Below the pieces are notes generated by a model that worked only from the letters and a program-made list of their open reading frames with translations, ran no database searches and had not been told where the DNA came from. Made by a program: the position numbers and the translations under genes. From Octopus sinensis (taxonomy: Eukaryota), in assembly GCF_006345805.1 (NCBI RefSeq), contig NC_043018.1:13702001-13766000 (forward strand): a DNA stretch of 64,000 nt. Reading direction: 5' to 3'. Of the stretch, positions 34,649 through 40,328 are shown in pieces. Within the stretch, counting starts at the first letter, position 1, and every line of letters starts with the position of its first letter.

Positions 34649-34721
34649 ATGAAAACACTCCTTGTTGTTCTCTGCTTTTGGTACTGTGTGCTAGTTTCGA
34701 ACGTCTTAACGTTTAAGTTAG
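34649..34721 (+). CDS. K4 coding exon 1: signal peptide
   Basis: Acceptor TTTGTATATTAACAG ends at 34640 and ATG is at 34649. Reads MKTLLVVLCFWYCVLVSNVLTFKL, then a phase-1 donor TTAG|GTAAGT. Confidence 0.8.
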
Positions 34722-35195
34722 GTAAGTACTACATGAACCCTGTGATCTGAGAAGGGGTACTGGCAGGAGAAGACGGAGAGTAATATAATGGAATTGTTTT
34801 CATTTTCTGTGCTTACTTTTCAGTCAAATGACGGGCAAAGACCAGTGCCCATATCATATTCGTTTAATTTTTCACTTTTATTCTTGTTTTCATAATTATT
34901 AAATGAAGGCGACGATCTGGCAGAATCGTTAGGGACTTTGGAAACAGATTTTTTCTATTTGTTCAGATTCTTCACACGTACACACATCGGAGCAAATAGG
35001 TCGAAAAGAAACAGCGCTAGAGTAAAATATGATGTTCTACTGAAGGTCACTATTTTCAGTTACAAAGGAATCGCTATAATAATTTTTGCGAAATATTTCT
35101 GTCTGTAACAGAAAATCAGGTTCTCTTTACAATTCTCCTTTTCTTTCGCACTCTTCTGCCTGCCTGTCTTTCTGTCTGTCTGTGTTTCTCAACAG

Positions 35196-35255
35196 GATAT
35201 TTAAAGCCATTAAGCTACAACTTTCGAAAACATCAAATTTCATTTTTTAAAATAG
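35196..35255 (+). CDS. K4 coding exon 2 (60 nt, symmetric phase 1-1, propeptide)
   Basis: TGTGTTTCTCAACAG|...ATAG|GTAAGT. Open frame (G)YLKPLSYNFRKHQISFFKI. Confidence 0.6.
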
Positions 35256-35449
35256 GTAAGTTGATTACAGATTGGAAAACTAATGATGAAGCTCCGTTTT
35301 TTGAAAAACTTTCTCTAAAGAAAGCTTACGAATTGATAAGCGTTTGTCTCTTTTGAATTGTAATGAGTTACTTGCTTCACAATAAGAAATGGTATCTATC
35401 AATCTCTTTCAATGAATGAATGGATCCATCTATCTATCTATCTATCTAT

Positions 35450-35805
35450 CTATCTATCTATCTATCTATCTATCTATCTATCTATCTATCTATCTATCTA
35501 TCTATCTATCTATCTTTGTTTTTTTCCTTTTTTTGTGTTCTTTTTTCCCTTTTACGATCCCTTTTGATCGAAAACCTACGCCAACCTTTTTTATTCTTTT
35601 GTTTTTTGTTTTTTTGTTGTTTTTTTTTCATCCCCCAAAAGAAAAGCTCTACCTTGTAACTTGTCCCATCTGTGTGCAGCCCTGTGTGGCCAATAAAGAA
35701 ACTTATCTATCTATCTATCTATCTATCTATCTATCTATCTATCTATCTATCTATCTATCTATCTATCTATCTATCTATCTATCTATCTATCTATCTATCT
35801 ATCTT
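35450..35805 (+). mobile_element. Short 3' end of the Tx1/L1-like element between two (ATCT)n tracts
   Basis: 35516-35702 matches the 3' UTR at ~6050-6192 (GAAAAGCTCTACCTTGTAA...CTGTGTGGCCAATAAAGAAAC). Confidence 0.8.
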
Positions 35806-36064
35806 TCTGTCTGTTTAACTATAAGTCTTTCACTCTTTTACCTCGATGTCTCACCAATACACTTGTAACCTAAAACACTTACAGCCACTGAATACCCCAG
35901 TTTTCGGCGTCTAATCCTTCTAGAATACAGTTGGCGGATTAATTCTTTTCCCAGCGCCTTTTACAATTCATTGATGGTTAGTTTCCTTCTATGAAAGTCA
36001 AGAAAGTGACGCAACGGCAAAATTCCATTTCTGTCCTTATCTCGATTGCTTACCCAAGACACTA

Positions 36065-36410
36065 TCCCCACTTACCAACCACATGGTTCCGGGTTCATTC
36101 CTACTGCGTGGCACCTTGGGCAATGTGCTTCTACTATAGCCCCGGGCCGACCAAATCCTTGTGAGTGGATTTGGTAGATGGAAGCCCTTCGAATATATGT
36201 ATATATATATGTGTGTGTATATGTTTGTATGTCTTTGTCCGCCAACATCGCTTGACAACCGATGCTGGTGTGTTTACGTCCCCATCACTTAGCGGTTCAG
36301 CAAAAGAGACCGATAGAATAAGTACTAGGCTTCCAAAGAATAAGTCGATTTGCTAGACTAAAGGCGGTGCTCCAGCATGGCCACAGTCAAATGACTGAAA
36401 GAGAGTAAAA
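36065..36410 (+). mobile_element. SINE family A copy in a K4 intron
   Basis: Matches the family A consensus. Confidence 0.75.
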
Positions 36411-36493
36411 GAGAGAATACTATACATTTGAATATTTTGGAACATTCTGCTGGTAAACCAAAATCTAATCTTGAAGCTTCTCTTATATATCAG

Positions 36494-36551
36494 TGCATGA
36501 TGAAGCAGCTGCCCACATTGATCTGGAACCAGTCGATGGTTTGATAAAAAG
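36494..36551 (+). CDS. K4 coding exon 3 (58 nt, phase 1 to phase 2, acidic propeptide)
   Basis: CTTCTCTTATATATCAG|...AAAAAG|GTAAGA. Reads (V)HDEAAAHIDLEPVDGLIK, and AG|A forms the R of a KR site. Confidence 0.8.
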
Positions 36552-39256
36552 GTAAGAATTTTATAACAATGATTATAACTTTTATCGACTATCATGGTCG
36601 ATAAAATCCAACCTAGCACATTGTTCATTTGTGTACATTCAGGTGAGGTCTGAGACCAAAATCAGTGCATAATGGCGGCCGTATCCTGGACACACATTGA
36701 AACACACACCTGTATTATTTCTAGCCTTCATTCCCACGCGCTTTTCTCTTTCGCCGACTCATCTTTCATTTACGTAAGCTGCCTCAATTCGGATTTGTTT
36801 GTGGCCACAAGTTCCCTAATCAAGTCTCGTGACTAGACACCCTGATGGATGAAAAACAACACTCAGCTAAGGGCTTCGGTTCATGAGAGCCATCAATGGC
36901 CAACCAGCTATGGGAGTGGACAATCATAACTACGACAGTTGTATTTATGGTATTAGAGCTGTTGGCGAAATATTTATTCGTAGGCTGATGATAAGTTTGT
37001 CGGTGTATCTGCACTAAATGGTCCTTATTCTTTTAAAATAGCATTCAATAAAGCTATGGTACTGTGAACATATCGATTAGTCTCTTTTTTTAACAGTACC
37101 CTAAACGTAATAGTCCATGAGATTTTTAATCTGGAGAGTCTGATGATCATAACTTCGGTTTTACATGATTGTATGGATTGTCTGACATCTGTTGCTGGAT
37201 TCTTGGCTTCTTTGTGTTGGTGCTGTGTCTTGTTGATACTCGTTTGACATCCCAACGCACAGTACATCCATCTGGGCTTAATAACTGTCTGCAGTATTTC
37301 AACACATCCAACAGCATAAATTATAAGACCTTGTAGAAAAACGCCGTGTGGCATGGTATATCCTCTGTTACTCACTAATCTCAAATCCGTCTTAGTCGCT
37401 ACAGTTTTAGTGTGCAACACTCCAGGGACATCAGAAGAATTTGTGCATAACCGCCTGTCATTTCATTCGTCAGACTTTTGGTTTCGATCGAAGATTTTCT
37501 CCTCAAAGAAGAACCAAAGCATACCATATTCGAATGGATTAACACTAATTTACCACTTGACAAGAACCAGACGGTTCATGAATTGGCTTCTTCTCAATAC
37601 GTACAATTTGTATCGCGTGTCCTCCTTCATTACAGATTTGATAGTCCGCTTCTATAACTGAAAGTCTTTGGTAATATCCCTCAACGATAATCCGGGATAA
37701 TGTTTGAAGCCCTGTAGATAATTTGTGTTGTCCAGTTAGTGTTTGAAGGATTAGAAAATGTTCTCTTTGATACTCTTTGAAACATTCCCACCAGAGTTTC
37801 CAGTTTCAATTCCATTTGAATTTCTTGTACGAAAAATCCTGTAATATTTAGAAATAAGCAGCATTGCAATAATTAAAAACAGACGAGAATACGCATACAT
37901 ATACAAGCACACGCACAAACACACGCACACACATACACACACACATACACAAACACACACATGCACACACACATACACACACACATGCACACCCACACGT
38001 ATCTACATGAATAATGCGACCAAATGGGAAACTCACTTGGGTATTATCAGATATATTGTCCTTCACAGAATATCACCTTGTGTTTTGAATTCAAATAATG
38101 CCAGAGGCTAAATTTCATTATCATCTTATTGGAGATGAGATGCATGGAACCAAAGGTGTTCAGCGATGGGTTCTCTGTGTTTTTCTCATTCCTCGGGTAG
38201 CGATGAATTGCTCCGTGTCTACAAATACAGGAGTAACGGTACATGCCGATGGCACCGCGAGACGAGGCTAATGTAATGATACTCTTGAGTGTGTGTGTGT
38301 GTGTGTGGTGTTGCCTGTATATATATATATATATATATATATATATATATATATATATATATATATATATATATAGATATGCTGTATATATATATGCTGT
38401 CAGATGCAGCACGGATTTTGTCAGTGAACAGGTCGCGGTCTTAAAGCGACGAAAATATTTTGACAAATTAAACTTAAATGTTGAAGTGAATCGAACGGCT
38501 TTTGTGTGTTTCTTAAATGGCTTACAAACACCTTCCACGCTGCCATTGTTTTCGTTCCAGCACACGATCTCAGATCAAATCACTTGCTATGCAAGTACAT
38601 CTCCGTAATATATATATATGTATATATATATATATTATATATTATATATATATATATATATATATATACATATATATATATGTATATATCATATCGAGAT
38701 CTATATATATATATATATATATATATATAAATATATGTATATATATATATATATATATATATAATATCTATATATATATATATATATATCTATATACATA
38801 TATCTATATATGTATGTGTATGTATATAATTATATATATACAGGCACACACACACATTCAAGAGCATCGTCTCGCGTGCCATCGGCATGTTCGTTATATG
38901 TTATATATATATATTATGTATTACATATATATTACAGTCTGCATACAAACATTCGTGTTCTGAGGAATTACATACGTAAATATACACATGTGTATGTTTT
39001 TATATAAACACGTTCTCACATTTCTCTCTGTCTTCTGTGTATAACATTATATATAAATGGATAGACATGTATATATATATTATATATATATATATATATA
39101 TATATAGATATATATATATATATATTATATATATATATATATATATATATATATATATGTTATATATAGTATATATATATATTATATATATATATATATA
39201 GTACGTTTATCTATTTGTTGTGCAAGATTTTTTATGTGATTCGTGTGTTGAAACAG

Positions 39257-39609
39257 ATATTGTTATATTTCGGAATGGTCATTTTGCCAGTTTAGCCAAT
39301 AAAATCACACGCACTATATATTTGGTGTTACTTTGCTTCAGTGATATTTATTTTGTGTCTCTCCTTCTAACCGTCAGCCATTTTGTATACAAAATGGCTG
39401 ACGGTTAGTAAGGAGAGACACAAATAAGAAAGAAGAAAACAAAGGACCACTGATGCGGTCACAGGAGTGTGACGAAAGAACTCTGGCCGAAATAAGTTTA
39501 AGATTAATGTAAAAATAAATAACACTGAAGCAAAGTAACACCAAATATATAGTGCGTGTGTTTTTATTGGCTAAACTGGCAAAATGACCATTCCGAAATA
39601 TAACAATAT
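39257..39609. mobile_element. Foldback/palindromic element among (TA)n tracts
   Basis: Arms ATATTGTTATATTTCGGAATGGTCATTTTGCCAG... and its reverse complement; centre CCATTTTGTA|TACAAAATGG; ~85 bp extra in the right arm. Confidence 0.7.
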
Positions 39610-40144
39610 ATATATATATACATATATATATATATATATACATATATATATATATATATATATATATATATATATATATATATATAATATATATATATAT
39701 ATATATATATATATCTATATATATATATATATGTATGCATATGTGGCGGTGTGGTACGATGCTTGCTCCCGAGGTACACTGTTTCGAGTTGGTACACAAG
39801 TTGCTTTGCGTGAATTACTATTTTTGATGTTGTCATTACTCATATGGTTCAATAATGCAAATATCTGGGTGGTATGCTGTGTAAAGGGTACTCACCAATG
39901 AGCACAGTATGCTTAAATCCTACCATCTGGTAACTGCGGTACCCATCCCAGATGAATCTAGCCTGTTACGATTCATGTTTGTGATTTTAAAAGCACCATA
40001 AATCTACGAGTAGGCTTCTTAGTGTGAATGCCTTCAAATGATACATCCACGTTTATATAAAGATATAGTGTCTCATAATATTGATACTGCTTCTGTCGGT
40101 AGCTTTTGTATTTATAAGTCTGTTCATATTTTCTGTATTTACAG

Positions 40145-40328
40145 AGAGGCTAAAGGAGATGACGTTAAATGTGCAATATATAAATGGTCGTGCACTATCA
40201 AAACAACTACAGTAGATCTTACTTGCTGTGAAGGTATGGAGTGTAGATGTAACCGGTTCTGGAAATCGAACTGCCGCTGTTATGAATTGACATATGAGGA
40301 TATGGGAATCAATCCTCCATCTGGCTGA
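40145..40328 (+). CDS. K4 terminal exon: agatoxin-like knottin mature peptide with C-terminal Gly
   Basis: Acceptor TTTTCTGTATTTACAG ends at 40144. Reads EAKGDDVKCAIYKWSCTIKTTTVDLTCCEGMECRCNRFWKSNCRCYELTYEDMGINPPSG*. The exons total 73+60+58+184=375 nt, i.e. 124 aa plus stop. Confidence 0.88.

Follow-up and report, generated by a model that had tools for sequence, protein, structure and literature searches.

A probable divergent CCWamide/agatoxin-like paralogue within an expanded octopus knottin family

The 64,000-nt stretch of Octopus sinensis DNA analysed here (NC_043018.1, positions 13,702,001 to 13,766,000, hereafter the window) carries several small eight-cysteine, knottin-type sequences, termed K1 to K4, of which K4 is the subject of this report. 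K4 is LOC115223109, annotated by RefSeq as an "uncharacterized protein". Window positions 23336-50328 correspond to CM016880.1:13725336-13752328 of assembly GCA_006345805.1 with 0 mismatches in 26,993 nt. A protein search with K4 returned LOC115223109 (P0001, 143 residues) together with isoforms X1 and X2 of O. bimaculoides LOC128250542 (P0002 and P0003), which are likewise named "uncharacterized protein". From gene structure, homology, paralogy and conservation across these two octopus species, all of which can be read directly, we put at roughly 0.75 the probability that K4 is a real gene, a divergent paralogue of the CCWamide/agatoxin-like peptide (ALP) family, with a likely product of 104 residues made from three coding exons as a secreted cystine-knot prepropeptide. 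K4 is thus a further, uncharacterised copy within a known family and not a new type of gene. Its features lie in the window as follows.

33336..33444, plus strand: 5' exon of RefSeq LOC115223109, with an in-frame upstream ATG (MHIFASLSLCF...QQ); probably 5' untranslated region
34641..34721, plus strand: first coding exon, with ATG at 34649 and the signal-peptide-like MKTLLVVLCFWYCVLVSNVLTFKL, ending in phase 1
35196..35255, plus strand: exon 2 of an earlier model (GYLKPLSYNFRKHQISFFKI), a 60-nt candidate cassette exon of phase 1-1, in no RefSeq model
36494..36551, plus strand: propeptide exon (VHDEAAAHIDLEPVDGLIK and the AG of an Arg codon), ending in phase 2 within the Arg codon of a Lys-Arg (KR) site
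40145..40328, plus strand: last exon, which finishes KR and continues with EAKGDDVK, the eight-Cys core, the acidic tail YELTYEDMGINPPS, a terminal Gly and the stop
40431..40436, plus strand: AATAAA polyadenylation-signal hexamer, 103 nt past the stop

A preliminary description of the locus had proposed four coding exons with GT/AG on each intron and phases 1,1,2, and these are confirmed directly from the sequence; the 124-residue string given there is identical to the translation of the four joined segments, a coding sequence of 375 nt. The coding part of exon 1 (34649-34721) is 73 nt long and flanked by ...acgtg/ATG and AG/gtaagt (a slash marks the boundary), candidate exon 2 lies between caacag/ and AG/gtaagt, exon 3 (58 nt) between tatcag/ and AAAAG/gtaaga, and exon 4 (184 nt) is preceded by tttacag/. 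As had been described, the KR site is formed by the last junction (AAA AG/A across the intron), and AATAAA is present at 40431. The RefSeq coding sequence of LOC115223109 (33336-33444, 34641-34721, 36494-36551 and 40145-40328), the splicing of which reproduces P0001 exactly, departs from that model in skipping exon 2 and in using the upstream ATG in the additional 5' exon. The precursor proceeds from a hydrophobic N-terminus, with its core at residues 3-19, through an acidic 23-residue spacer and KR to a C-terminal peptide with the framework C-x6-C-x10-CC-x4-C-x-C-x7-C-x-C. An intact prepro-peptide with an eight-Cys, knottin-type framework, as originally suggested, is therefore supported.

Spiralian CCWamides are orthologues of the arthropod ALPs (Thiel et al. 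2021, PMC8557429). Peptides of this family have eight Cys residues, are amidated on a C-terminal aromatic residue and carry a further aromatic between C6 and C7. Their genes usually comprise three coding exons, of which the first encodes the signal and the last the peptide; a conserved phase-2 intron falls between bases 2 and 3 of the C-terminal basic codon of the cleavage site (PMC8557429). The corresponding values for K4 and two relatives are as follows.

K4: coding exons of 73, 58 and 184 nt; phases 1,2; split Arg codon AG/A
Canonical O. sinensis CCWamide, LOC118768477: coding exons of 70, 52 and 157 nt; phases 1,2; split Arg codon CG/A
O. bimaculoides LOC128250511: coding exons of 61, 55 and 193 nt; phases 1,2; split Arg codon AG/A

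The first exon of K4 matches exon 1 of the canonical CCWamide in position and phase, and the K4 gene of O. bimaculoides has phases 1,2 and the split Arg codon as in O. sinensis. The splitting of the KR codon, which the preliminary description had recorded for K4, is a hallmark of the CCWamide/ALP family.

For comparison of the peptides themselves, a hidden Markov model (HMM) was built from 28 spiralian CCWamide peptides in the supplement of PMC8557429, which lists CCWamides of many molluscs, Octopus vulgaris included. K4 scored 38.0 bits against this model (E 8e-14 for a single comparison), O. bimaculoides K4 37.8 and LOC128250511 42.6, with K2, K1 and K3 at 26.3, 12.0 and 11.1 bits. Shuffled versions of K4 in which the Cys residues were held fixed reached 11.3±5.1 bits with a maximum of 31.2; because none of 2000 attained 38.0 bits (z = 5.2), the similarity between K4 and the CCWamides is not a matter of the Cys framework alone. 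Profile-profile alignment with hhalign gave the K4 group a 98.5% probability of relationship to the CCWamides (E 3.5e-15) in an alignment of 44 columns that takes in the full set of Cys, and all eight Cys of K4 align to the CCWamide profile, with F and W as the aromatics between C6 and C7 (CRCNRFWKSNCRC). BLASTP of K4 against the octopus CCWamide aligned only 21 residues, with 48% identity (E 0.002). The preliminary description had noted a resemblance to agatoxin-like peptides and proposed profile and BLASTP comparison as a check on it; the HMM score relative to the shuffles, the hhalign result, the intron phases and the split Arg codon all bear the resemblance out. At the level of sequence the family placement is accordingly supported, with CCWamide/ALP-family paralogue as the more precise name.

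The canonical O. sinensis CCWamide, LOC118768477, is 92 residues long, 100% identical to the O. vulgaris CCWamide and situated on CM016860.1, unlinked to K4 on CM016880.1. As the canonical gene resides on another chromosome, K4 is a divergent extra copy, a paralogue and not the orthologue. The two proteins share the order of signal, propeptide, basic site and C-terminal eight-Cys peptide, a common framework (C-x6-C-x9/10-CC-x4/6-C-x-C-x6/7-C-x-C) and a CxCN-aromatic-...NCRC core, and their peptide regions are ~26% identical in a multiple alignment. They differ at the C-terminus, where the canonical octopus peptide ends in -KLW-Gly and K4 in a 14-residue acidic tail that closes with -PPSG. The arthropod ALPs ("U8-agatoxin-like" peptides of insects, crustaceans and chelicerates) have the same eight-Cys framework, CRCN-aromatic-...NCRC motif, intron phases and split basic codon as K4, but terminate in a conserved basic stretch and then an aromatic-amide, an ending that K4 does not have; unlike the ALPs, K4 is a secondary duplicate on the spiralian branch. 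A profile of the octopus family also retrieves ALP-type proteins from marine samples (P0013-15). In Pfam, K4 matches only two families of spider inhibitor-cystine-knot (ICK) toxins, PF05980 (Toxin_7) and PF02819 (Toxin_9), the match spanning the CC-x4-CxC...CxC half of the peptide.

Comparison with O. bimaculoides provides a further view of the gene. All splice sites and the stop of K4 are kept there, with gene models called independently in the two species. The first exon is 95.7% identical at the nucleotide level and the last exon 89.6%, against ~83% in the flanks of the latter, and all eight Cys are retained. Within the knot, codon changes between the species are seven non-synonymous and none synonymous. 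Loops 1-2 account for six of them, and the remaining one, between C6 and C7, is Arg-to-Pro; apart from this the core CCEGMECRCN.FWKSNCRC is invariant. In the tail there are three synonymous changes and one non-synonymous, and with the Gly kept and the changes mostly synonymous the tail looks constrained, although all these counts are too small for a formal selection test. A tandem duplicate of the K4 last exon, at 22152-22277 of the O. bimaculoides locus (L002), serves as the alternative last exon of isoform X2; it has lost the C1-C2 segment and retains six Cys, and the O. sinensis window yielded no counterpart.

The predicted mature peptide of K4 comprises 59 residues after removal of the Gly, with an isoelectric point (pI) of ~5.2, a net charge of ~-1 and an average mass of ~6802.7 Da when four disulfides and an amide are assumed. 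We infer its route from the sequence features. The precursor would enter the secretory pathway, with cleavage of the putative signal peptide, and form four disulfides in an ICK arrangement; a prohormone convertase would cut at the KR encoded across the last intron, freeing a peptide of ~59 residues, and the terminal Gly may give rise to a Ser-amide. Amidation is plausible because O. bimaculoides K4 retains this Gly, the last codon before the stop, as does the duplicate last exon of that species (...GIAPIG). The acidic product may then act extracellularly on some receptor or ion channel. As for the fold, an ICK peptide is expected to have a knot of C1-C4, C2-C5 and C3-C8, an extra C6-C7 bond and a C-terminal beta-hairpin. 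The K4 models are consistent with a knottin fold without proving it: a hairpin was predicted at residues 31-35/43-47, and Foldseek matches in the PDB were nearly all ICK peptides, among them spider toxins, the agouti C-terminal domain and tachystatin. A PDB sequence search with the mature peptide likewise gave weak ICK matches only (E >= 0.6).

Several observations weigh against K4 being a secreted CCWamide/ALP paralogue of this kind. The two AlphaFold2 runs behind the models were of low confidence (mean predicted local distance difference test scores of 61 and 68.5), and none of the Foldseek matches was significant (E >= 0.27), with template-modelling scores of 0.5-0.7 on the target. K4 falls below both Pfam cut-offs (PF02819, 13.1 versus 21.3 bits; PF05980, 16.7 versus 27); on PF02819, O. 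bimaculoides K4 (15.7 bits) and LOC128250511 (17.6) also score below 21.3, and canonical CCWamides (23.5 and 24.8) and an ALP (24.6) pass. The aromatic-amide C-terminus of the family is absent: K4 ends in ...YELTYEDMGINPPSG, with Ser before the Gly and 14 residues past the canonical W-Gly position, and C8 is followed by YELTYEDMGINPPS-Gly in place of the ~5 residues that lead to W/F-Gly in canonical peptides. Nemertean CCWamide 3 also lacks the aromatic-amide and has yet been placed in the family (PMC8557429). With the aromatic-amide missing and the peptide acidic, as opposed to a pI of ~9.1 and a net charge of ~+6 for the canonical octopus CCWamide, K4 may have a target other than that of CCWamide. 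Nor is the KR site conserved; in O. bimaculoides the junction reads NR, with KRR five residues further on, and the mature peptides of the two octopuses therefore probably differ at the N-terminus. Between these species the introns of the gene share 82-91% identity, and intactness together with exon conservation therefore amounts to only moderate evidence of selection. The upstream ATG at 33336 has A at -3; were it part of the mRNA, translation could start there, leaving the signal peptide buried. Finally, literature searches for the LOC and accession identifiers, and for octopus with knottin, returned nothing on the K4 gene.

Among the alternatives, the one that survives best, though we still regard it as unlikely, is that K4, instead of signalling endogenously, is a CCWamide-derived toxin of venom or defence, the posterior salivary gland being one possible source. 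In its favour, the family is tandemly expanded in octopuses, with at least two clusters on one chromosome, and the non-synonymous changes of K4 are concentrated in knot loops 1-2. Its C-terminus and charge depart from those of the conserved neuropeptide, and recruitment of ALPs into spider venom offers a precedent (PMC8557429, PMC13311285). On the other hand, substitution counts are far below what a selection test requires, and a literature search linking the octopus salivary gland with agatoxin-like peptides yielded nothing relevant.

Less probable again is that the main product of the gene is the four-exon, 124-residue precursor of the preliminary description, with exon 2 (35196-35255) included. 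Exon 2 has a strong polypyrimidine tract with AG, a consensus AG/GTAAGT donor and a frame-preserving phase 1-1 structure; in O. bimaculoides 55 of its 60 nt are kept along with the open reading frame (ORF) and both splice signals, and one nemertean CCWamide gene has five exons. However, all three RefSeq models in the two species (P0001, P0002 and P0003) omit it and join exon 1 to exon 3 (...TFKL/VHDEAAA...), and the canonical CCWamide gene and LOC128250511 have three coding exons only. The adjoining intron is as well conserved as exon 2, and three of the four codons changed between the octopuses are non-synonymous, so its conservation gives no sign of coding and it is an unsupported candidate cassette exon. 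Its inclusion would add 20 propeptide residues and leave the mature peptide unchanged. Exon 2 occurs as a single copy; an exon-2-like ORF at 23114-23022 on the minus strand has no donor site and was set aside as a chance similarity.

The 5' end of the coding sequence can be judged in the same manner. The upstream ORF of the 5' exon is 81.5% identical to its O. bimaculoides counterpart, with 11 non-synonymous and five synonymous codon changes; it evolves as non-coding sequence does, and the N-terminal extension in RefSeq is probably spurious. Other precursors of the family begin with MK and a hydrophobic core (MKIIILL... in the canonical CCWamide, MKGISVLL... in LOC128250514), and the three isoforms of LOC128250511 differ solely by such N-terminal extensions. 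Given the non-coding behaviour of the 5' exon and this common type of start, the ATG at 34649 is likely the true initiation codon. The preliminary description was thus probably right in its choice of ATG and exact in its four segments, but probably wrong in its length of 124 residues, the most likely product of K4 being a prepropeptide of 104 residues from three coding exons.

It is somewhat less probable still that K4 is a decaying or untranslated duplicate whose frame is open by chance. With non-coding DNA 82-91% identical between the species, an intact 61-codon exon is weak as proof of constraint, and the duplicate last exon of O. bimaculoides is already without C1-C2. Moreover, the K4 protein clusters derive from genome records only and none from the Logan assembly of read runs, by contrast with the canonical CCWamide, for which one Logan cluster exists on a 1.3-kb contig. 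Against decay stand the absence of any substitution in the eight Cys codons, the far lower divergence of the CC...CRC core and tail than of the flanks, the mainly synonymous nature of the tail changes, and the retention of all splice sites and the stop in independently called models from two species. That the resemblance reflects convergence of an unrelated cystine-knot peptide is very improbable. The domain is indeed short, Cys-rich and below the Pfam threshold, with a BLASTP alignment of just 21 residues (E 0.002), but the similarity far exceeds the contribution of the Cys framework (z = 5.2), the profile-profile probability is 98.5%, and K4 agrees exactly with the family in its number of exons, its intron phases and its split Arg codon.

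A CCWamide/ALP paralogue at K4 would not stand alone. K1 to K3 share its window and encode CCWamide-like eight-Cys peptides at the positions below.

161-382, plus strand: K1, last exon
11150-10929, minus strand: K2, last exon
28762-28974, plus strand: K3, last exon
24843-24902, 25576-25623 and 28762-28974, plus strand: K3, apparently complete, with signal, propeptide and knottin exons

In the collection containing LOC115223109 the K3 locus has no gene entry, and K3 may therefore be unannotated in O. sinensis. An acceptor tract, TTCTGTATTTACAG, is common to K1 through K4 and fits their local duplication. In O. bimaculoides, a neighbour of the K1-K3 type adjoins the K4 orthologue, and a second cluster (CM046622.1:29150904-29186003, L003) lies ~7 Mb away on the same chromosome; it comprises LOC128250511, LOC128250512 and an unnamed 134-residue gene on the minus strand, with a 109-residue gene at the edge of the locus. 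Another relative, LOC128250514, is found on this chromosome as well. When 1.84 billion representative proteins were scanned with the K4 profile in HMMER, the only proteins returned were three from octopus, with no squid, cuttlefish or other match at E <= 0.001. This leaves two readings: K4-type genes are confined to octopods, or those of other animals have diverged beyond detection.

K1-K3, LOC128250511, LOC128250512 and LOC128250514 have the eight-Cys family and the last-exon organisation in common with K4. K1-K3, LOC128250512 and LOC128250514 are distinguished by hydrophobic C-terminal tails and a shorter loop 1, compared with the soluble acidic tail and terminal Gly of K4. Each of the last exons of K1-K3 carries a tail SSQNMIHVANNG followed by a hydrophobic stretch of 14-18 residues, and this tail could be a membrane anchor or a glycosylphosphatidylinositol-type signal. 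Intron read-through was considered as a source of these tails and rejected, as the RefSeq model of O. bimaculoides LOC128250514 (P0011) keeps its hydrophobic tail as coding. The idea had come from the O. vulgaris model CAI9738754 (P0004, 273 residues), which joins several K-type exons to exons 3 and 4 of K4 and to a distant ORF; its pieces in the window (36490-36600, 40137-40232, 56702-56761 and the K3 exons) make it look like a chimeric gene prediction.

In the preliminary description, K4 was taken as the ancestral-type member from which K1-K3 diverged. K4 is indeed less derived, being nearer the canonical CCWamide in its six-residue loop 1, the Trp between C6 and C7 and its HMM score (38 versus 11-26 bits). 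That K1-K3 diverged from such an ancestral-type K4 is only weakly supported, and that K4 is their actual ancestor is not supported, as LOC128250511 is closer to the canonical peptides (42.6 bits) and the tail of K4 is itself derived. A wider interpretation, which we consider less likely than not, is that the single, deeply conserved CCWamide/ALP neuropeptide gene expanded in octopuses to at least eight knottins in at least two clusters, with members taking on new roles as toxins, defence peptides or tethered channel modulators. Under such an expansion, K4 would be the soluble, acidic and possibly amidated form, and K1-K3, LOC128250512 and LOC128250514 would be membrane-tethered; the octopus knottin radiation would then, if real, mirror among molluscs what happened when ALPs were recruited into spider venom.

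To our knowledge, CCWamide/ALP is an old protostome peptide family to which neither a receptor nor a function has been assigned, and one that has entered venom once before, in spiders. An octopus-specific paralogue in a tandem cluster constitutes a natural experiment in the diversification of such a conserved neuropeptide scaffold, the changes on offer being the charge reversal and new C-terminal tail of K4 and the hydrophobic tails of its sister copies. Peptidomic and venom studies of cephalopods also gain concrete candidates here, and LOC115223109 can be given a name as CCWamide-like.

Some structural features of the window accompany these genes. K2 and K3 lie within a large inverted duplication, ~10.9-15.3 kb on the minus strand and ~25.5-29.0 kb on the plus strand. 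Its pieces include 13168-13245 (plus) paired with 26968-26891 (minus), which carry an ORF, MLRRRHSGTGTRRFCSTCGKDF, and tail remnants at 13384-13446 (plus) and 26728-26666 (minus). Around K4, two long (ATCT)n microsatellite blocks at 35425-35513 and 35705-35806 flank an insert of ~190 nt in the intron after candidate exon 2. An octopus repeat resembling a short interspersed nuclear element (...cagtcatttgactgcggccatgctggagcaccgcc...) is present in two copies of opposite orientation, one at ~36270-36400 in the intron before exon 3 and the other at ~40455-40600, just past the poly(A) signal. The last intron of K4 contains a 111-nt inverted repeat (39244-39354 and 39512-39622), the arms of which are 93% complementary and separated by 157 nt; set in long (TA)n tracts, it has the appearance of a foldback element or a miniature inverted-repeat transposable element.

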